From Klebsormidium nitens (Eukaryota; Plantae; Klebsormidiophyceae): a DNA stretch of 64,000 nucleotides. The stretch spans positions 181,852-245,851 of the forward strand of contig DF237016.1 in NCBI GenBank assembly GCA_000708835.1, written 5' to 3'. Made by a program: the position numbers and the translations under genes. Below are positions 18,481 through 54,700 of the stretch, in pieces (within the stretch, counting starts at the first letter, position 1; the number at the start of each line of letters is the position of its first letter). The notes beneath the pieces were generated by a model that saw nothing but the letters and a program-made list of their open reading frames with translations, was not told the DNA's origin and did no database searches.

Positions 18481-18574
18481 TCAGTGCACCTATACGCCGC
18501 CTAGGCATAACCCCAAAATCTGCATCTCGGTGCAGATTTTGGGGTTATGCCTAGGCGGCGTATAGGTGCACTGA
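18481..18574. repeat. Perfect 44-bp inverted repeat with 6-nt loop (fold-back/hairpin)
   Basis: 18481-18524 is the exact reverse complement of 18531-18574; loop TCTCGG. Confidence 0.95.
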
Positions 18575-38700: not shown

Positions 38701-40880
38701 GTGGGCGCATTCGGGTCGGTGTAGCCCTCCAGGCCGTGGTACCAATCGATCCCGATGATGGGGATGGCCCCGGGGGGCTGTTCCGGGACGCATAGCGGCA
38801 GCTTCGTCAGTGGATTACCGATATTGTCGTGCACGTGGCACTCGCCCTGCGAGAGAGAGGATATTTGCTTATTTTCTGAAGCCGAAGAAGGACTGGTTCT
38901 GTGATTTGGTCGTGGAGCCATTAAAACTGCGCAGAAGCAGCTGCGGGTCTGCCATGGGCGTTGCTAAGAGAAGTCAGGAGCTGTTGCTCTTCTTAGAGAC
39001 AATATTGCTGGCGCTCCGCTACATATTTCCAATTCGTTACCGGTCCCTTCTCAACCTCGTGCTTGCGCTTCCCTCGCTGACACATCATTCCATTCAGCCA
39101 CCGGCGCTTGCCTGCACAGTGCAGAAGAGGATGAGCCGCCCGTCTGGCGACCACTCGACGAGCGCGAGCTGCAGGTCGAGCTCCTTGCCCCACAGCCGAT
39201 TGCCGTCCACGGACCCCACGATAACCGCGCCGTCCTCGTACACGATGCAGATCTTCTGGCCGTCCGCCGTCCACTGCATGTCGCGCACGATGCTCTGCAA
39301 CGGGACCAATGTGACTGTTTGATTGAAGAGACCATTGCGATTAGAAGTTGGAGAGCGACGGCATCGGGATGGATACTAGATCGCTCTGAAGACCCATCTC
39401 ATGGGCAAATCCTTTGTTCAAGTGGGCACAGCCTAGGCGCGACAATGAAAGCGTCGCGTCTTGGTTGCACTCAATCCGAAGCGCAAAGCAAAAGTCGGTC
39501 AGAATGCGCAACTGGACGGGCATGCATATTGGCACCCCTAGCGGGCTCCACAGCGGACACTTTAGCCGGAATCGTGCGCACCTTGTTGCGGTTGTTGATC
39601 ATCTCCTCGAACCACATCCCCTTGTGCAGCATCCACACGATGATGAGCCCCTGCTGGTCGCTGGTGGTCAGCTTGCGGTAGTTCTCGTTCCAGCACGTCA
39701 CCAGCACCGCCCCGCTGTGCCCCTCCAGAGTCTGGTTCATGCTCAGGTTGCTCGCGGCGCTGCTCGCCGCCGTCGCGCCCTTGCTGTCCTTGCGTGCCAC
39801 GCCGTCCAGCTTCAGCACCTGGGGAGATATTGGTGGTCAAGGTTAGCGGNNNNNNNNNNNNNNNNNNNNTGCGCCACGGCGTCCAGCTTCAGCACCTGGG
39901 GAGGATATTGGTGATCAAGGTTAGCGGCACCCAGGTTTTGGTTGTTTGTGTGGCCCTCTATTAGAGCGGTGGGTATAATATGCTCGCGGCAGACGCGCCC
40001 TTGCTGTCCTTGCGCGCCACGCCGTCCAGCTTCAGCACCTGGCGAGGGTATAAATGATTAGGTTAGCGGAACCCGGTTTGGGGCTGGTTATCTGGCCCTA
40101 TGTTAGAGCGGTGGGTGTAGGGTGCTCGCAGCAGTCGCGCCCTTAGTGTCCTTGCGCGCCACTACGTCCAGCTTCAGCACCTGGGGAGTTTTCAAGATTC
40201 AGAATATCTGGTCAAACCAAGGGGTTTGGGAGACTGAGGCAGCTATCTCTCATGGAAAGTTCATGCCTGCTTTTTGCAAGCTGGGCGTTCTGCAACTCTT
40301 TACAACCTGCTGTCACAAAGTCCAATGCTGCCAACAGAAAAACAAGACGCAAGGAAGCTACCCTTGAAACTAAACGCTGGTCCCTGGCACCTTTGCCAAA
40401 GCCAGGCTCCTTCAAAACAAGCAAGTTTGCAAAAGTGTCACTGTGCCTGATCCTGCTGGGACGTGAGTAATCGCTCATCATATGACGGGGGCACTTATAG
40501 TGGTGGTGGTGATCCATAACTGGCACTGTGCTGATCAAGTTCATTAGTGATAGCGGTCGACAAATACCCAGAGTAATTGTGTTGAGTGCAAGCTATGGAG
40601 AGACAACGCGGCTGGGACTGGTTAGGTTACTATGCAAATGTAGGGTGGCAGTACGGGTGGGTTCGGGTAAGTTTCCGGGTTCAGCTTTGTAGTGTCAGCT
40701 TCGATAAATGGACAGCTTGAGCCTTTAAAGTTAGTCTGAAGAAGTATGCGTGGTGGCGCTTACCTTGAGGAGGCCATTGTCCCCACCGCATGCAATCCAG
40801 CCCTGCTCCGAGTTCCATGACAGGCACTTGAGCTTCACCCCATTTGGTATGGCCACCTTCTTGCTCAAGTAGATAAGCAT
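29712..40880 (-). CDS. WDR35: WD repeat-containing protein 35 / intraflagellar transport protein 121 (IFT-A), about 19 exons
   Basis: Exon 1 (40880-40764) [39 protein letters not shown]; later exons give [97 protein letters not shown] and AIELYRRA. The last exon (29939-29712) carries the C-terminal zinc-finger CVASGRSI...CRTCKH...CPLCH. Confidence 0.97.
39770..40190. repeat. Tandem copies (at least 4, period about 140 bp) of the WDR35 intron1/exon2 junction
   Basis: GTCCAGCTTCAGCACCTGG plus adjacent intron sequence at about 39805, 39881, 40024 and 40166; an N gap at 39850-39869 lies inside the array. Confidence 0.85.
39850..39869. other. Assembly gap
   Basis: Run of N. Confidence 1.
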
Positions 40881-42019
40881 TGTGCCCGCCCTTCAGGAAC
40901 AGGTCATATCATTTGTAATGGAGCTAGCAAGCAATAACAAACTAATTTTGCTCCACCTTATCAGTAAGTGCCCATGGGTGCTTGTTTAGAGGAAGATTGG
41001 GCGAGCTCGATCGCAGCTAGTAGGCGGGCCGAACTCCTGGCCGCTTGTTCGGATAATAAGCGGCCCACTGAAGACTCAGGACTTTGTCTCACCCAGGGAA
41101 GCCTTGTACGGTAGATTTCTATCTGCATTTTCTAGAACTAGGCCTTGTTTGGACTTCTTGTTCAGGACTCAGGCGCCAGCCCTTTGCCAGCTCCACCTGA
41201 CCATCTAAAACATGCTTCGAGCTATGTTCCTCCACTGTTCCTCTTTCTTCGCGCAGCAGAGAGCGCACCACTAGCTCTAGCACAGGCCCCCCTCATCGCA
41301 ACTTTGGACAAGCCACATATATGGTGGCCAGGGCCTCGAAAAGGCGGACTTCAGGCTCTGCACCAGAAGGCTGAGGTCTGAGTGCTGCTCCTTTGGAGTC
41401 TTTGGAATACCGGAGGTAGTATCATGTATGTACAGGTCCAGTACCGGGTAGGTGGTGGTTCGAAATGTTCAACTGCTCAGACTTTGCACAAGACCGTCCG
41501 ACGCAAATCGCACCAAAGATTGCTTCGGGTACGAATTTCGGGGAAGAGATTGTTTGGTGCCATTTTGGGTTCCTGCATGACTTGCTCTGCAGCACTGTGT
41601 AGATGTGTACCGTATGGTCTGATCAATCTCAAACTTGATCCATGCCCGGTACCGTAACATACCATGTAGCTGCATGTTCTGTATAGTGTACACAGTACTA
41701 CCACACGAGCGCGTCCGCAAGCTACCACCTCCCTGATCTGACATAAATTGAAGTTGACACAAGCAGGAAAGCAGGTACTGCCGTGAGCAGAAGGCTCCTT
41801 GCCACGTAGCTCGAGCCTCCATCTTTCTGGCGCAGGGGGGCTTCTACCTTCCTCATTGACTCCATCGGCATTTGCACAGAATCGGTCAAAGGTTGCAGCT
41901 TGGAGACTTGCAGAGCGGTAATAGCTTATGTAGCCTCAGAAGCTCATATTGCTGGTGGGTTTTTTCAGGGAAAATTTATTGCCTGCTGAGTTGTGGAGTT
42001 GGTGCAGAAAGGATATACC

Positions 42020-45000
42020 ATGGCCTCGATTCAAAGCAGAATCAGGTCTTCCAGCTACTGCAGAGTTGTCCTACAGGGCAGACTCAGGAAGTATCGTGCA
42101 AGTTTAGTTGAGCCAGAAGTTGAGCTGGAAATGCCCAGCTTTTCACCTGGGCTTTCAGAATCGGAAGATTAGGGCGTTGATACCCTTCGTCCTGCTGCCT
42201 TAAGGAAATCTCAGCGGGCAGTTGTACATTCTGATGATGACGAGTTGCCCCCAGCAGCTACACAATGCCAGGCCAGAAAACGGAAGCGCCCATCAATGTC
42301 AGATTCAGAGTCGGACTCGGATGATGAAAGACTTAAGAAGCAACCGCGTGCAGATGATCCGCAAGCGGTCGAGGAACTGAGAAGACAGCGGCGCCAAGCT
42401 GTGAAGGCGGCAGCTGAAACGGCAAGGGCAAAGGCAAAGAAGCCTTCGACAAAGCGTAAACAACGTAGAGTGGAAGAGTTTTTAGCAGCCAAGAAGCAAC
42501 GCAGGCAAAAGCTTGCCAGACAGGATAAGGAAGCATGCCTGCGAAAGGCGAGGCAGGATCGCCAGTTCAAAAGCTTTCCTTACGAGAAGGATCACATTGA
42601 AGAAGCAACAATGCAAAACTACAAAGCAGGCCCAAAGGCTTATCAGGTTTGTGCTCTCCTTCCATACTTTTGATCTGCAGAAAAGCTAGACAGGACCCTG
42701 CTTTACTGCTTTCAATCAAAGGGTCATGATACGTGTACTTATCTCTAGCTGCTGATTTGATGATTGCCTGTAGTAGCAAACGGTTGGGGCGTACCATTGA
42801 CAGAGTCATATCAATAAGGCATGCCAGGCGAGGAAGTGAAAATGGAAGCAGCATACGACCTAACAAAGACTAAAGATCTCAATGCAATGACCCAAATTGG
42901 CAGAAAGTATCATGTGGGCAGGGCTTGGCAGACAATAAAGGACGCTAAGATCAACAAGTGGCCATGCCTGATTTGCGTGCTCTGGTTTTGCAGAAGTTCT
43001 TCCTGCAGAGAGACGGCGTTCGCTGGGCTGACATCACTGCAGAGGGCATCCGCACTTTCTTTCGAGAGACGACATGCCATGTGAGTTCTCGTGGCACTCC
43101 TGGCTTGCACAATTGGTTGAAAATTTGAACAAGCCTGGCGACCACGCGAGGCCTTACGTGCATGAAGATTCTGTTCCGTATGCAGATTCTTGCATTGTGT
43201 GCAGCATTGTGGTCTTTAGAATTGTCGATCTAACTGTTGTGAAGGAGAGCATTTCTGATCAGCGATTATTTCACTCTCTCCTATGGCAGAAGCCACCCAC
43301 TCTCGACAAGTACGCCAGGGGTCTTCAGTGGCATTTGTACCATCAGTGGGTACTTGACGGAGAGAAAGGCCCAGAGCCAAACTCTTGAGCCTTTCCTGAA
43401 GTCAAGGAGCGACTGAAGACTGAGAAGAAAGACACCGCCCGGAGGCGCCAAGAGTGAGGATTGCATCGAACATTATAGCGCTTGCTTTGTCCTGAACTGG
43501 TCTTTCCCGAGTTTGCAATATAGCAGCACATGCCTTGAAATCTCTGAGCGGGCTCTGAGCACTGCCCATTGTGTTGCTTGAGCTGCTTATATTTGTTGAA
43601 GGCTAGCGGTTCACCTGGGCTGCACCACATGTTTCTGGAGATTGCTTGCAGAGGGAGTCGGTATTTGCAGAGCACCTATAGGACCAGTAGATCTCCAGGA
43701 AAGAATCATGCGCTTGAGTACAGGCTTGATAACATGGGAGCCTTTTTTCTGCAGGGACCAGCTGGACAAGCACGACGAGCTCACGGACCACCTCTCACCT
43801 GAGGACTGGGAGCTCTTCAACAAGACTCAGCTAGAGAATGCTTCCTTGTCCAAGGAGGAGCTCCGTGGCACAGGAATCACAGCAGTCGGGTCCCTCCAGG
43901 CATGGTAAGTCGTCTGACTCAAGTGCATCAAGCTTTCAATGTGGCCCTGCTGATTTTCTTGGTTCCATTGTAGAAGGTTGTCAGGTGCATCACATAGATC
44001 ATGGTTGTAAACCTGACTGATGTTGCGATGCTATGATGCTGGGATTTTGATGCATGTCGCCGGGCACGTTGCATTCGATTGGTTAGTTCATTGAACAAAA
44101 TCATGAGCAGAAAGGCAGCGGGCAGCCATGTCACGTTTGATCACAACCAGTTATGCTGTTTTAGCTAAAAAGTCCTGAGCCTCGCCACAAGGACAAATTG
44201 ATCTCGAGGGTTTTCCTTTGCAGGGCGGACAACCTGGCGCTTTTCAGCTGCATCATCCGGAGCAAGACCACGCGTGAGATGCAATGGTCCGACCAAGCAG
44301 CGCGTATTGAACCCATGGTCGAGGTGAATATTGCTCACAACGAGGTGAGCAATATTCTCGATGCACCCCAGGTGAAATTCCCCTATGCGGCATGCCTGCT
44401 TGACCAGTCACACGAAATCCTTGATTCATGAGAGGCATTCTTTGGGTAGCTGTCGAGAAGTTAGAAGGATTGTCGAGAAGTTGGTATCCTCCTGTTGATA
44501 GTCTGACATATCTGGTGGTTTGATAACGACGAAGTGCTCGATCAAATGTAACTTGCAGTGCATGGAAGTTTGACAAGTGCCCTTCTTTCTTGTGGCAGAA
44601 CGGACGAATTGAAATACACTCAGTCCTCCGGCACAAGAATCCTCTGTTCGACTCCCGCTTCGCGCGCTCGTGTCACCTTTTCTACCTCTGGGAGAAGAAG
44701 CGGAAGAAGATATTGAAGGCCGGTGACAAGTCCTGGTAAGCATTCAGTCACTGTCCGGTCAACTTCGTCGCATGTACATATCGCTTTTAAATCTCGAGTT
44801 TTTCAGTGCTCTTAATTCGTTCTCGTGTTGGTGCTGGTCCCTCAAACTTGTACGTACATCAAACGCTGTGCACGCACCAGTTGTCTCGATCAATGCACTC
44901 TTGATGAAAGTACTTGAGTCTGCTTCTTACTGTGCTTCTTGAGTAAGTGACCTTGAGGATTCGAACTTGAGGACTGAATGCAGATGCTTCATGCTTCGAT

Positions 45001-48000
45001 CATTGATTGCCCAAGCGTCTCAATGTACATGCCTACAACGTGCTTACAGGCAAAGGGAAATGATCTCCCCCGGTTCCAAGAATCCCTTGAAAGGCCGCTG
45101 CGCGGCAACCCAGGCCCGTTACATCCGGTCTGTTCAGAATCGGCTAAGCATCCGCTCCAGAAAGGTGACGCACTTTGGGCGGAAGCAGGGTATCAAATGG
45201 CTGATGAAGTCGGGGTGAGCATCCTAACTTGACAACGTTTGTATCTGCTTCAGCAAAAGAGTTGGCCTCCATGCACTCGATGAGATGAGTTCTTCCCGGT
45301 ACAGTGGACTTTCACCTCAGCACCGCTGTTGCGCTCAACGACGTTCCGCACTTCGGCGCTCTCGGGAGCGTGCACGCACCACTTTTGAATCCGCATTTGG
45401 AACAGGGGTTTAGTTTCAGCCTGTGCGGAGTCCCCCACAGCGTGCACGCACCACTTTTGAATCCGCATTTGGAACAGGGGGCTAGATTCAGCGTTTGCGG
45501 AGCCCCCCACAGCACATTGTCCACTTATTGATTGGCGAGGAGTGAAAGGTGTGTGCCAACTCGGCTTTGAACATTGCATGCAGCACGAGCGGTGGGTTGC
45601 GAAAGCGGGAACGGAAATTGCGCACCAGAACTGATCAAGCCGCATCTGTTCAATTGATTGCAGAATACCGATGGCTGACGTTCAGAAGGCTGCCAAATTT
45701 GCCCAACAGATGAACAAGCACTTCAACATGTCGTACGCGGACGACACGCCGCTCACGGTGCAAGTCGCAATGGCGGGCTTTCCTGAGGAGGCCCGGGTCA
45801 GCAACTTCTCGGACGGGTATCGGATCCCCCGGTAAGTTGCTAATGGTTGGAGGATGCAGGCATTCTTTTGGGATGTTCAAGTCAAGGGCCGAGCTCTGCT
45901 TTTCTGTAGGAACAGTTCTCTCCAGTGCTCAGTCCCGTTTGCATCCAGCTCAGCCGTCCGTGCAACGAGCAAACGAGCATACGAACCCGTGGGCATACCG
46001 CTCCGGTCTCTTTTAGAAGCTGTACAATGCTACTGATCCTGAACACCTCTCTTGATTTTGCAGAGAGCACGCCAAGGTGGACGAGAAGGCTGTCCAAGAG
46101 CTCTTGAAGGATCTTTGTCCGTGGATAGACAGGGAGTACAACAAGGCCAAGAAGGTGAGTGTCGTCCCCTGCGAGCTTTCTATCCTGTCCAAGAAGGCGT
46201 TCAAAATTTGAGCGAGTTGTTCGTCATGCCAAGTCGCGATGACCCGTTTTCGTGACTCGCAATGCGGACAGTCTGGCAAGTTTGGTCTTGGTCTGGGTGG
46301 ATCTGTTGTACTTGTCACTGGTCTCGACGTGACGTCAAAGCACTTCAAAAAGCAATTATACATGTACTGTCACGAAGGCTTCTCGCTTTTTTGAATCATA
46401 GGTGGTAATTTCAACTCGTCAGGCATTGAGTCGGAAGAAGTTCTTTGTGCAAACATTGTCGTCATTGTGCTTCTCGCAGAGAAACGAAAGAGCACGCTTG
46501 AAAGCGGGGCGAGACCTTACGGAGGAGGGTGTGCTCCGGTTCCTTCAAGAGAGCAAGCGGCTCTTCTTGGAGGACGCCGCCTACATGCAGGACGAGTTCC
46601 CCGACCTGCCCATCTACGAGTTGAAGGTTTTCCAGTCACCGCACTGGGATTCGTTCAAGAAGGCCATCCTTGCAGCCGAAGCGGATCCGGAGAGCTTTCT
46701 GCCACCAAGGAAAGACCTGCCGGTGAGAAGTTGTCAGCTGCGAACTGGAGTTCATGTTTCTTTTGTCAAATACTTTCAGACATTTTTGTCTCAGGTCTTG
46801 TCATTTCGATCAGGTGACCTGCCGCAGTCACAAGGTTCGTGTTGATAAGTGAGGGCTCTGCTTGTCCGCACCTGCCGCTTTCGAACAGACTACATGCTGA
46901 CGTCACCCGCAGGTCAGCAGTAGACTGTCGTCAAAGGTGAGATCAGTGACATTTGATGTCACCAGCAAGAGCAATGAGCTAGTGACGAGGAACACACAAT
47001 GCTTGTACTTCAGCTGCAAGAGCGATTCTGTCATTTCAGCGTGCCTTTAGTTATTGTGAGCACGCACTGAGTAACCCGTAAAGCAGGTACATAACTCTCT
47101 GCCGGTCTGCTTGCAAGTATCTGAAGAATCTAAGAAAGTGTATTCTTGATTGCAGTCGCGCATCCTCGAGGTGGTCAGCATCCTGAGCAACGAGTTAGCT
47201 GCTGTGAAGGAGGCAGTCCACAATGTGGGCGGTCAAGTGCAGCGCGGGGCTGCAGGGTCGGCCTACAGGTTGTCGGCGTTCGTCAGCTGATCGAGGGAGG
47301 ATTAGCGACGCGAACAGAACCTGTTCCGACGGTTGACGCCAACGTGGAGAGCGCGACGCTCGGGGTGGAAGGAACCTTGAGAGCAGAGAACGAGCGTCTG
47401 CAACGAGAGGCGCGACTACATCGGGCAGAGATGGCCTACCTCAAGGCGTTCTACGCCGGCGCCGGGGAGACTGCTTCAACGGATCGAGGGGGCGAAACAG
47501 GTGACGTCAGAGGGGGCGTCGGAGAGGGCGGCGTTGGAGAGGGCGGCACGAACGAGGGGGAAGCGGCAGCGCGCGTTTTTGGTCAGGGGGTTGCGGCGCG
47601 CGCGAGGGCGCAACAGATGGCAGCCGGTGTGAGGCCGGAAGTCCAAGGTGGGAGGTTCAGGTTCGCACGAAGTGGAGGGTTTGGTGGGGAGGCTCGATCG
47701 GAGGGACGGAACGGGGGCGGTAAACGGCCTGAGGAAGTGAACCGAGCGGGAGAACCATCCACTTCGGGGCGGGGAGAAGTTGAAAGAGGAGCACGGACAG
47801 GGCAGCGTCGGCCGGAGAACAGAACGGAGGAAAGCGGTAGACAGCGGGCTGAAGCAACGGAGCCGGTCACTGATGGCGAAGGCGAAAGAAACGAAGAGGA
47901 TCCAGGCCGAATTTATCGAGAAGGGGGCTATCCGTGGCCCCAGGTGAGCACGGTGGAAGACGTCTGGACGGAGTGGAGCTTTGGGCTTGAGAACCATCCG

Positions 48001-48282
48001 TCTATAACACAGTTGGAGGAAGAGAAGAAATTGTTTCCAGGAACGAACTGGAGAAAGGGGCCAGTCCATAGGAAAAGGTATTTTGAGAGGAAAGAGGTCA
48101 TCGAGTTTGTGTTGAGGTTTCAAACAGAAAAGCAGTTGACTAGTACAGCTACGGCGGTGGAGGTGTTAGGAAGCAGGTACTCTAGTCATCGGAAGCTTCT
48201 AAACGAAATTGCACGATTGAAAAGAATCGAAAGAGTTGAACGACAAGCTGCTCGGGAGGAAGCAGAAGGTGATGATGACTAG
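42020..48282 (+). mobile_element. Crypton-like (CryptonF-type) spliced tyrosine-recombinase gene with NDC10_II-like and C-terminal GCR1_C-like domains; probably inactive
   Basis: Spliced translation shows LFSCIIRSKTTREMQWSD (Arg at 44258), NGRIEIHSVLRHKNP, RKVTHFGRKQG (HxxR at 45171-45182), MNKHFNMSYADDTP..VAMAGFP (Tyr at 45734), LKDLCPWID, FLEDAAYMQDEFPDLPIYELKVFQSPHWDSF and STVEDVWTEWSFGLENHPSITQLE...WRKG...RKRYFERKEVI. In-frame stops at 42170-42172 and 43386-43388. Element ends not determined. Confidence 0.85.
45367..45512. repeat. 72-bp tandem duplication inside a Crypton intron
   Basis: Identical 42-bp core AGCGTGCACGCACCACTTTTGAATCCGCATTTGGAACAGGGG at 45367 and 45439. Confidence 0.9.
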
Positions 48283-49046
48283 TACTTTAATACGGATGCG
48301 GACATATGTTGGGGAAGCAAACTTCAGTGTAAATTATTTAGAAAAATCTTTATTGTACCGGTAGCTTTGACATTTGATAACGTGCTGTAGGGGACAAACA
48401 ATCTGTAACAATCTGTACATGTACGTATTGTTACAAACTGCACATGTACGTATTCCAGTAATCTTTTTCCCTTCGAGCAGTTCTTCTCCTACAAACGGTA
48501 TCATGCCGAACTCCTCTCCAATACTGACGCGAATCATGCTCAACTTGTTGAATTAAGTCGGCCATGTGATCGTATGAATTCTAGCAAAGCTTTTCCTGCA
48601 TAATAACAAAGTATTGATGGGCGAGGCTCAGTTCTATGATTGATGGGCGATGGGGCGAGGCTCAGTTATGTGCATCATGTAAATACTACTTTGGTACTTG
48701 GTAAATCTGTAGACGGCCGCGGCCGAATCAGTACGGTGAAATGCACCTGAATTACATGATGCTGTACACTGTTACATTGCAAGAGTGGATATGAGAAAAG
48801 TTATGTAATCGGTACTTCTGGCATAAAAAGCAATGCGCGTACTAGCTATAATATCAATTAACACGCGTGGTTCAGATGCAAAAATGTCCGGTCTGCAGCA
48901 TGAAGAATCACCGCAAGTTCCGACGCAACCAAATGACCCGTGATGCAATAGAAGCTCCACATGCCGATCAGAGCTGAGCCTCCATATCAGGAGCTATGCA
49001 TGCCAGGGCGCCGCCGCATGCGGCGCGCGCGGCAGGCGGTCACGCG

Positions 49047-49077
49047 GCCGCCCGGCCGGCAGGCCCGGCCGGGCGGC
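49047..49077. repeat. 13-bp GC hairpin in a very GC-rich noncoding block
   Basis: GCCGCCCGGCCGG-CAGGC-CCGGCCGGGCGGC. Confidence 0.85.
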
Positions 49078-49835
49078 GCGCTGCCAGTGCAGTCACGGTA
49101 CGTCACTGCGGCCAGGCTTAGGGCTAGCTGCAGTGCGGCCGCGCGGCCAGCGAAGTTGCGCGCCCGGCCGCCGGCGGGCCGCGCGCCACACTGCGCGCGG
49201 CACTGTATTGAGTCGGCGCGGGCGGCGTTCGCTGTGGCCGTGCTTGACAATATAACCGATTGAGTATATTCCACAGTGCACATATAAGTTATGATAAATT
49301 GTAGTAGTGCCGATGTCGTATCGGTGTCGGCCGCGGACTCCCATAGACTCGGTACGCACCGGTCTGAGGCTTCAGCGGGTTGGTAGGTCGCGAGGGAGGA
49401 CAGGAAATGGGGGACGGCGGTACCGTCCTCCGTCCGGTCCTCGAGTGGTGGGGACTTATGTCCGCACGCGGCGGGCCGTGTTGCGATCCTTGTATGAAAC
49501 AACCAGGGGCGGTACCGTACTGGTATATACGGTCCCCCTCATGCAAGTACCACTGCACAGTGTGGTAGGTACCTCGTGTCGAGGCTGGTCTCCGTTCCCA
49601 AAACCGTCCCTTGGCCGGTCTTGCTTCAAATTTTGCCCCGCGGTGTGGCGTCTTTTCAGTCAATTTTGCCCGACGGTGTTTTGGTCTTCGTCCCCGACCG
49701 GCGTCCCCAGCGTCCTCGGCGGTGTCCCCCATGATTCATTCCAAAGTCAAGCCTCTTCCTGATGCATCAAATCATTAAATAGCCTCCAAAGAGAATGGCC
49801 ACCTTACTCGGGTTTCATGCCAGACGCTGACGGGC

Positions 49836-49915
49836 GTGCCGGCGAGCCACGCATGCCAAGTCTGCAAGAGCGCCGGCAACCCCAGCAAGATGCTGCTCTG
49901 CGACTACTGCTTGGC
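49836..49915 (+). pseudogene. Truncated PHD-finger fragment
   Basis: ACQVCKSAGNPSKMLLCDYC matches the first half of a PHD finger (C-x2-C...LLCD-x-C); the His/Cys second half is absent. Confidence 0.5.
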
Positions 49916-50258
49916 GTGTGGCTATGCCCAAGGTGCCGAGAAGCGGAGGCGCAGCAGGTGTGACTCGCTTTGGCCGCGGGAACCGCAGTGGCAGCGAGTG
50001 GGGGGGAAATGGATAGGCCCGGTCGAATAGGGTCGTTTTGTTCATTTTCATCATGTCGCGAGGTGTCAAGGGTCGAGTAGGCCATGCATAGTCTGTGCCG
50101 GCAGGGATAGACGGGTAGGAGTAGGCCACGTGGCCGTTCCCGATGCCAGCCGGCAGAGGAGACGATACCGCACGGCAGATTGGAGGAGTTGTCGAGAAGA
50201 AGCGGGTTCGAGTGGCGGTGGAAAGGACTGGTGCTCGCGAAGAGGTTGGAGGAGCTGG

Positions 50259-50363
50259 TTGCGTCAGAAAGGCTCAAAGTCTGCGAACGGATATCAGCAC
50301 TGGCACTCAGTGCTTGCGTCAGAAAGGCTCCCCAAAGTCTGCGAACGGATATCAGCACTGGCA
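50259..50363. repeat. Short tandem duplication, period about 55 bp
   Basis: TTGCGTCAGAAAGGCTC(CCC)AAAGTCTGCGAACGGATATCAGCACTGGCA present twice. Confidence 0.9.
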
Positions 50364-51744: not shown

Positions 51745-54700
51745 TCAGTTCAGCTGCACCACCATGCCGTACGCGTTGAAATAGGCGAGGAACTCGTCGA
51801 ATTCCACGTCGCCGCTGCCGTCCGAGTCCATGACTTCGAACAGTTTGCGCACCACAAATTCGTTGATGTGCGTGCTCCCAGTGGTCCGCTTCTGCAGGTC
51901 TCGCACCAGGTCCGTCATTTCGAGCAGCGTCAGGCTGTTGCTCTTGTCGGTGTCGTAGCGCGCCCACATCTTCTCCAACTGCACGCGAGGGATTGACGGA
52001 GGTTTTCAGCGGGCAAATCGTGGATGGTTAACCACGGGCAATCTTTTGTAACTTCGCGCGCGAGATTGGCGGGCGTTCTCGGCCGTGAACGGTTATAGGC
52101 TCATCGAGAAGAAGTGACGTGAACAACAACCAAGGTTGGGCGGTAACCAGCCTTAGAGGAAGCTTATGCAACGGTTATGTGGCCAATAACCTTAAATTTG
52201 AGACTGAAAATCGGCCTCGAAGTGCAGCGTCAGGCTGTTGCTCTTAACGGTGTCGTAGCGCGCCCACATCTTCTCCAACTGCGCGCGCGAAAGTGGCGGG
52301 AGGTTTTAGCCGTGAAAGGTTAAACGATGACTAAGAAGGTGAAGTGAACGAAAAATAGACTTTGGGCGGTTAACGGTCTTAGAGCAAGGTTGGGTAACGG
52401 TTATGTTTTCAATAAACCTGAAACTCAAGTCTCAGAATGGGTTCCTGTTATTGGCAGGGGAGAGTGCAAGACGTAAATCGACAGGAAGATGAGAGACGGA
52501 CAACCGGCAGGGCCAACGCAACCCGAATTGAGCCTCTTTCACGAGGAATTCACAATGATGATTTGATTTTACGTACGTTGAGTTAGGCTCCTAGGTTGAG
52601 TAGAATCGGTTGCCCGGCAATATCAGTGAAACAAGAAACCTGGACTTAAAGCAAACGTGCTCCTATCCCTAGACACTCAAACACCTGCCCGAACCAATCC
52701 CGCGTCTCACGGTCATGGCCGATCAGTAGCTTAAGTCAACTTAATCGTTACACACGGATTGTTGGAAAATAACCTATTGTGCGGTGACGAGCTGTTCAGA
52801 CGCTGGGTATATATGCGTTCCATAAGCAAAGTTGGGTGGTAACCTGGAATGCACCAATGTTAGAGCCCATCTATTTGTCCATCACCAAAACTGTTTAGAA
52901 ACTGTCAGCCTGTTTAGCAGCAAGCCCTCCTATGTTGACATCAGTCAAGTCCGAACCGGTACCCAAACCCACCTCCTCGCGGTCCATCTTCTCCTCCTGG
53001 TGCGCCTCGATGAGCATCTCCTTCGAGAAGCGTGACACGAGGAACCGTTGCGTCAGCGTCGGCACGATGAAGAAGAAGAGCGACAGCCAGAACTTGGCGT
53101 AGTCCGTGTGCGAGCCTCCATCGGCGCTGGCCTGCTGTGCGTCGCTAGCTTGTGCCAGCGCTGCAACGTCAGAAAAAAGGAGCGGTTAAAATTGTTTTCT
53201 AAAGTAGGTACGATAAGCTTAGGTTAAGGTACTGTGAAGGATAGCGTTAGTATTGGGGTTAGGGTGGGTACTGGTGCGGAGCGGGTGATCGTTTGGGTTT
53301 AGGCTTTTAGTGTTAGCTTCGTATTTCTTGAATCTTCTATTGGTAAGCAGTTTCTCAGGTGAATCAAAGTTAATAGGAATATGCCGGCGCGCAGCCTTTG
53401 AAGGATCCATTTCAGCGAAGTTGAAGTTCCGAGATCTCACCCGCCCACAAAAAAATGTTCGGAGTTGCCAGCACGATGTACAGGTCCAGGTTATGACCCG
53501 GGGTTAGCAGGTTCCCCCGGAAGAACTTCTGCCACGTGGCAGCCAGCAGCGCCCCCAGCAGCTGCATGCCGACCACCTGGGCTAGCGCCAGCCAGAACTG
53601 TTGAAAGCACCTCTGCACGCGCGCGCACGTTGAAATGGGGCTATTAACCTGACCGGGTTGATGCCTGGTTAAGTGTGGTCCTGCGGCTAAGGGATCATGT
53701 GCGAGAATGATTGAGTTATATTGTTCAGTGTGCGACTGCAAGTCGACTCGACGAAGGTGAAAGTGACAAGATTTCTGGAGGAGGGGTTAGGCAAAGCGAA
53801 GATTAGGACCGGATTCTCGATCTCGAAGCAGGTTGAAGCTTGGATCCGTCGGCGGAGATTGGAGCCAGTTGTGACGATATTTCAAAGATTAAGAGGCCTT
53901 GAACGGGCAAGAGGGCGAGTAGAAGCATGAAACGCAAGTGCCTTCTACTGAAGCATTTTTCTTCGAGACCAAACCGCAAAATGGGCAGAAAGAGCGCTGT
54001 TGATAGGTACTAAACAGCCTCCAAAGAACGCTGACGGCCGGACAATTCGACGTCTCGGTAGTTACCTGAATAATGAAAACCTCTGCTGTGCTGTACGTGT
54101 GGTTGAACACGAGGTGGATGAGCGACTCGGGTGTAAACTGGTACCCGGAGAAGAGCCCCAGGCACATGAAGGCAACCGTACCGAGCCACTGCCACTTCTT
54201 GGCGTGCTTCTTGCAATCCACCGGGGAGCGCCTGGAGAATTGGAACGACACGTAAGCGGCAGTCCATTGTTGGAAGCTCATGGGGGGACGATCGTGAGCA
54301 GACTCAATAAGTGTTCGATCCTATTTCGGCATGGGCGTGTCTGCGAGTGGGGTGTTCCGCTGGTCAATACGATCCTGATGCAACTGCAATATTTTCAACT
54401 TGACCATTCTGAGTGCGCTGTTAAGAATCGAAACTTGCGAGGATGTTGCTATGACTCGATCCTCTTCCTTTTCCGAAAATCACATACCAGTTCCAACTCT
54501 TTCTTCGTATTGTTTATTCAAGAGCTTTTTGTTTAGTGTGCATATCGTGCGTTCAAAGGATCCATCGGAATCGACCCAACTGCGCTTTGATCGAGCCCCT
54601 TTTTCAATGGGTTGATCATACGGAAGTGTATCTGTCCTCAGAGTTCGGGTGTTAACCTTGGTTATGAGCTGGCAATGCGCTGGTCATGGGCTGCTTAGAA

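Follow-up and report, generated by a model that had tools for sequence, protein, structure and literature searches.

A broken but still spliced CryptonF-type tyrosine-recombinase gene in the streptophyte alga Klebsormidium nitens

Combination of a tyrosine recombinase (YR) with a GCR1_C domain defines CryptonF (Kojima and Jurka 2011, PMC3212892). A gene of this kind on contig DF237016.1 of the streptophyte alga Klebsormidium nitens raises the question of whether it is part of a mobile element, a gene retained by the host or a recent arrival from elsewhere. We analysed a stretch of 64,000 nucleotides around it, hereafter the window, which agrees with DF237016.1 (assembly GCA_000708835.1) without a difference over 22.6 kb. 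The first-pass annotation, made from the sequence alone, had proposed a CryptonF-type architecture (YR/NDC10_II followed by GCR1_C, with many introns); this was supported, with a streptophyte alga as host, and the pseudogene state of the copy had been overlooked. In our view the locus is probably a dead member of a CryptonF DNA transposon lineage of Klebsormidium, one that is old, present in few copies and moving by excision.

The gene consists of 11 exons separated by ten introns, all with canonical GT-AG borders and with phase consistent from exon 1 to exon 11. Exon borders were set by eye from donors and acceptors and then compared with RNA-type contigs; the corresponding runs had been labelled RNA by guess, and intron-skipping contigs identify them as transcripts. 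All ten introns were seen as GT-AG joints in three runs from three studies, with intron 5 retained in some RNA contigs. The summed exon length from ATG 42020 is 3,080 nt (approximately 1,026 codons). The features are as follows, with exons 5, 6 and 8 compared to the relative L013:

42020-48282, + strand: whole coding locus, Crypton-type tyrosine-recombinase gene
41756..48452, + strand: approximate transcribed span (contig limits, not mapped RNA ends; strand from GT-AG orientation)
42020..42646, + strand: exon 1, coding part; acidic/basic low-complexity N-terminus; donor seen in RNA
42994..43080, + strand: exon 2, putative core-binding region; joints in RNA-type contigs
43290..43453, + strand: exon 3, with in-frame TGA at 43386-43388; contigs X5, X9 and X11 identical across the exon
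43755..43904, + strand: exon 4; joints in RNA-type contigs
44224..44344, + strand: exon 5, catalytic Arg I at 44258-60; 11 codons short against L013
44599..44735, + strand: exon 6, strand after the Lys loop and RH motif; 76% amino-acid identity to L013
45050..45214, + strand: exon 7, His II at 45171-73 and Arg II at 45180-82
45664..45831, + strand: exon 8, Phe at the His/Trp III position (45698-700) and Tyr nucleophile (45734-36); 82% identity to L013
46064..46154, + strand: exon 9, PWI block
46480..46722, + strand: exon 10, C-terminal end of NDC10_II
47156..48282, + strand: exon 11, coding part; linker, frameshift near 47245-47259, GCR1_C at 47941-48162, stop at 48280-82
40734..40880, − strand: first exon of WDR35/IFT121, neighbour outside the element, head-to-head (PF24797, E 4e-19)
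from ~51745, − strand: histidine-phosphatase/EF-hand gene, downstream neighbour

The upstream limit of the transcribed span was given by contig X5 (41756) and the downstream limit by X5, X9 and X11 (48452, 48450 and 48395, respectively), provided that there is no splicing beyond the compared stretch. ATG 42020 has a strong context and lies 1140 nt from the first exon of WDR35/IFT121; the NCBI model begins at ATG 42296 instead. The NCBI annotation cuts the locus in two, a 584-aa product (42296-47290) and a 239-aa product, KFL_000670400. The latter model joins a PHD-finger stub at 49836-49920 (+ strand; Pfam E 0.0026), which may be part of the element or of a different relic, to an exon-11 ORF instead of GCR1_C; this join is doubtful because the RNA contigs apparently stop near 48450. 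Intron 7 contains a 72-nt tandem duplication (45367-45510, 92% alike).

Domain searches, trees and comparisons were made exon by exon. GCR1_C (PF12550) was recognised in exon 11 with E 1.4e-13 and 51 bits against the Pfam cut-off of 23, confirming the C-terminal block pointed out earlier. The second expected domain, NDC10_II (PF16787), fell under the cut-off with exon 10 alone (E 0.0075); it is on record for the NCBI 584-aa product of 42296-47290, as an unmarked database entry with E at most 1e-5. Longer relatives of exon 10 carry NDC10_II above the cut-off, several of them together with GCR1_C, with E down to 1e-28. Exon 2 searched alone against Pfam gave no match. CryptonF elements lack reverse transcriptase/RNase H, being DNA elements and not DIRS; here, ten spliceosomal introns were found and the scanned exons gave no match to an RT-like Pfam domain. 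There was also no 2A-like motif within or near this copy.

The catalytic residues occur in the expected order, Arg in exon 5, His and Arg in exon 7, Phe and Tyr in exon 8, and the AGF, PWI and DAA blocks extend across exons 8-10, all where the first reading had located them. Alignment fixed His/Arg and Tyr; Arg I was assigned solely from its motif and position. The alignment of exon 7 covers the His-x-x-Arg box, and that of exon 8 to an intronless YR (P0036) places Phe opposite its Trp (z 5.9 against shuffles). The tetrad R-H-R-Y is present both in this copy and in L013.

Three or four lesions make this copy a pseudogene. The first lesion, a probable one, is an in-frame TAG at 42170-72 (exon 1) within an otherwise open frame of more than 200 codons; it counts as a lesion only if ATG 42020 is the start, and would be harmless with the start at 42296. 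The second is the TGA 43386-88 in exon 3, an exon included whole in RNA contigs. Thirdly, exon 5 is without 11 codons between 44320 and 44344 as compared with L013, and the catalytic-Lys loop has gone with them; L013 reads AKTND directly before a donor at the same position as the exon 5 donor. The KTN loop, previously reported as not clearly found, is truly absent, and by comparison with L013 its loss is a lesion of this copy. The corresponding Lys is essential in Cre (PMC2943603). Other exon-5 donors, or a hidden mini-exon with the Lys loop, were ruled out: the RNA is spliced at donor 44344, and in the relative the donor occupies that very position, immediately preceded by the loop. The fourth lesion is a frameshift near 47245-47259, after which the frame stops at 47288 and GCR1_C is severed from the YR part; the relative L001 stays in one frame across this place.

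Contigs of DNA and RNA show no differing letter and no gap anywhere in 41950-47949. An assembly error behind the stops was ruled out, as DNA and the three RNA-type runs agree letter for letter. The proposed joining of ORF fragments by splicing into one protein was not confirmed: the joints are seen in RNA, and the spliced frame is broken by the TGA, the frameshift and, with the start at ATG 42020, the TAG. Translation of the spliced RNA would yield 50 aa if begun at ATG 42020 and 178 aa if begun at ATG 42296, ending ahead of the catalytic domain; as its spliced frame is read, this copy cannot make an active recombinase. An autonomous Crypton has an open frame and the catalytic Lys, and both are missing here. 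The broken copy is nevertheless still transcribed and spliced. Its two stops in ~3 kb would correspond, very roughly, to 1-2% neutral change, so that its death is recent by comparison with its separation from the relatives.

These relatives form two lineages. The close one is known from short genomic contigs belonging to two further sample sets, covering exons 5-9 (L013), exon 10 (L005 and L006) and exons 10-11 (L001 and L002), with L004 in addition. Against it, the gene shows over 407 codons 72% amino-acid identity, pS of 0.83 (saturated) and pN of 0.17; the resulting pN/pS of 0.21 with saturated pS reveals long purifying selection before the recent decay. Every intron position tested is common to the gene and the close lineage, and the intron sequences do not align. 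The close relative has R, K, H, R, F and Y with no stop in the exons seen, and a one-base shift in an A run after GCR1_C. The second lineage (L011, L012, L014 and L016; 35-55% identity) comes from the same samples and shares exon borders and the Phe; it includes stop-bearing copies, L011 and L012 among them. In one sample, two second-lineage copies, 72% alike, were present, which could equally be two strains. The two sister lineages thus co-occur in two separate sample sets, and the host of their contigs is presumably Klebsormidium-like.

The Phe that replaces Trp (AAKF), noted from the outset, proved to be common to the relatives. Since these keep the Lys loop and the frame and yet have Phe, the residue is a trait of the lineage, and the absent loop a lesion of the copy. 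Phe as a lesion was ruled out, since L012, L013 and one paralogue from the source DNA run have it as well. Phe at the Trp position is a tolerated, active substitution in Cre and Flp (PMC2943603), and therefore need not mean lost catalysis in the algal lineage. The gene defines a sub-lineage whose active site naturally has the Trp-to-Phe change, which in Cre and Flp has been studied by engineering it (PMC2943603).

Searches for further copies gave a mixed answer. No other contig in the source DNA run was at least 85% alike over any length, and no other copy of the exons exists inside the window. In the same run, two divergent contigs match exons 8 and 11 over 30-32 nt and extend beyond the match as homologous coding sequence, one of them with Phe. 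A distant, decayed element (L015) has Trp and a KTN loop and agrees with the gene in at least three intron positions. Taken together, the divergent contigs of the source run, the stop-bearing and paired copies of the second lineage and decayed L015 are signs of what may be a dispersed family. L015:3100-11700 is itself an intron-rich Crypton with part of the Tyr-bearing exon internally multiplied, near an Indigoidine_A-family gene.

In the protein search with exon 10, matches beyond the close lineage were at most 51% identical, and two of them (P0015 and P0018) were discarded as chance matches. The exon-10 tree groups the two Phe lineages (89/90, not starred); being a single-exon, unrooted tree with no taxon labels, it is silent on a donor. 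There were no related loci among metagenome and viral contigs. A word search with a YR alignment returned only an intronless family. The relative P0021 (L007-L010) is an intronless NDC10_II-type recombinase of 685 aa, closely flanked by two other ORFs in contigs of ~4 kb from 11 samples; a PDB sequence search with it found nothing.

Around the locus, neither element ends nor an empty site was found, and there was no long direct or inverted terminal repeat and no terminal repeat beyond chance. The flanks share 527 6-mers, too many for short repeats to be informative without mapped ends, and CAYCG occurs there too often to be interpretable. One downstream segment may be mentioned:

48990..49245, no strand: GC-rich multi-hairpin segment, ssDNA fold z -3.5, 540 nt past the apparent transcript end

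It is possible that this segment is an element end or an unrelated relic. An exact 31-nt repeat with 58-nt spacing lies in the downstream intergenic DNA at 50256-50363.

As in the CryptonF of fungi and oomycetes (PMC3212892), YR and a C-terminal GCR1_C are combined in one protein, with the order R, H-x-x-R, aromatic residue, Y. In contrast to them, the host of the present gene is a streptophyte alga, Phe occupies the Trp position across a sub-lineage and the copy itself is a pseudogene; the short (4-6 bp) direct repeats that end CryptonF elements, in place of TIRs, were not recognised among the many 6-mers shared by its flanks. By the features tested, the gene is a CryptonF in the form of a dead copy. 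A CryptonF of the green lineage is not new: CryptonF-1_cRei of Chlamydomonas reinhardtii has been published, with transposition observed and insertion preferentially near genes (PMC9977147), and the first suggestion of a widened host range was overstated. Both are green-algal CryptonF, and the gene-proximal site of the Klebsormidium copy fits this insertion bias; CryptonF-1_cRei is active, targets CAYCG and has had its ends mapped, whereas the Klebsormidium copy has no mapped ends. The literature searched contained no report of Cryptons from Klebsormidium or any other streptophyte alga.

If the locus is a dead transposon, the intact 11-exon gene would have encoded a protein of ~1,030 aa, with a basic N-terminus, a core-binding domain, a tyrosine-recombinase domain (R-K-H-R-F-Y) and the C-terminal GCR1_C. 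By analogy to CryptonF-1_cRei, the enzyme would have excised the element and, with a preference for DNA close to genes, recombined a short motif at its end with a target that matches it. The present copy would have landed head-to-head with WDR35 and then accumulated the nonsense, deletion and frameshift lesions observed in it, while its continued transcription was perhaps aided by the neighbouring promoter region. The gene supports an old radiation of intron-rich CryptonF elements within a streptophyte alga; this copy, because it is dead, is a poor experimental subject.

The transposon reading has against it that no sister copy of at least 85% was seen in the source run, that no ends, terminal repeat or empty site were found, and that the search gave one close relative per sample set, roughly equidistant from each other, as orthologues would be. 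The same single copy, the one relative per sample set (~70% alike in all three pairings, with synonymous far above non-synonymous divergence) and the precise splicing and transcription in several studies would suit a Crypton-derived host gene, i.e. a single-copy recombinase or DNA-binding protein recently pseudogenised in this strain. Yeasts kept Ndc10/Gcr1 in this manner, and their domesticated CryptonF genes (Ndc10/Cbf2, Gcr1, Msn1 and Hot1) share NDC10_II-like and GCR1_C domains with the algal gene. We hold this explanation, the likeliest of the rivals, for unlikely: the relative retains all catalytic positions, while the catalytic site is gone from yeast Cbf2/Ndc10 and Gcr1 (PMC3212892), the lineage is surrounded by divergent paralogues and decayed copies, and the C-terminus of the relative has the one-base shift. 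Furthermore, there is no downstream flank similarity to L001 or L011, whose contigs of 1-3 kb are too short to reach any neighbouring gene. Somewhat less probable still is that Klebsormidium long kept, by vertical inheritance, a catalytically competent Crypton-derived recombinase with Phe for Trp, which strain NIES-2285 lost recently; if true, it would be a domesticated Crypton retaining catalysis, unlike the yeast and animal cases.

Spliced RNA in at least three studies despite early stops could also mean that the broken copy is kept as a regulatory transcript, or for a short N-terminal protein dampening other Cryptons. This is very improbable: contig depth is uninformative on level, dead copies transcribed beside a host promoter require no function, and the lesions are distributed over the gene in the way expected of neutral decay. 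A recent horizontal arrival of a fungal or oomycete CryptonF, raised by the first-pass annotation and recalling the first description of CryptonF from these groups and the inferred transfer between them (PMC3212892), is unsupported and highly improbable, given closest relatives with the same introns, saturated synonymous sites and sister lineages together in two sample sets, remaining exon-10 matches of at most 51% identity, composition equal to that of the window (GC ~0.5; CpG o/e 0.90 vs 0.91) and the existence of CryptonF in Chlamydomonas (PMC9977147).

Several repeats were observed elsewhere in the window. Near the 5' end of WDR35/IFT121, an array of ~142-nt units (39698-40188) repeats part of an exon-like sequence and adjoins a 20-N gap. 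At the EF-hand end of the downstream neighbouring gene (51924-52422), an exon-plus-intron segment is duplicated (94 nt, 84% alike, spacing 300), and a perfect 44-nt inverted repeat with a 6-nt loop is located at 18481-18574.
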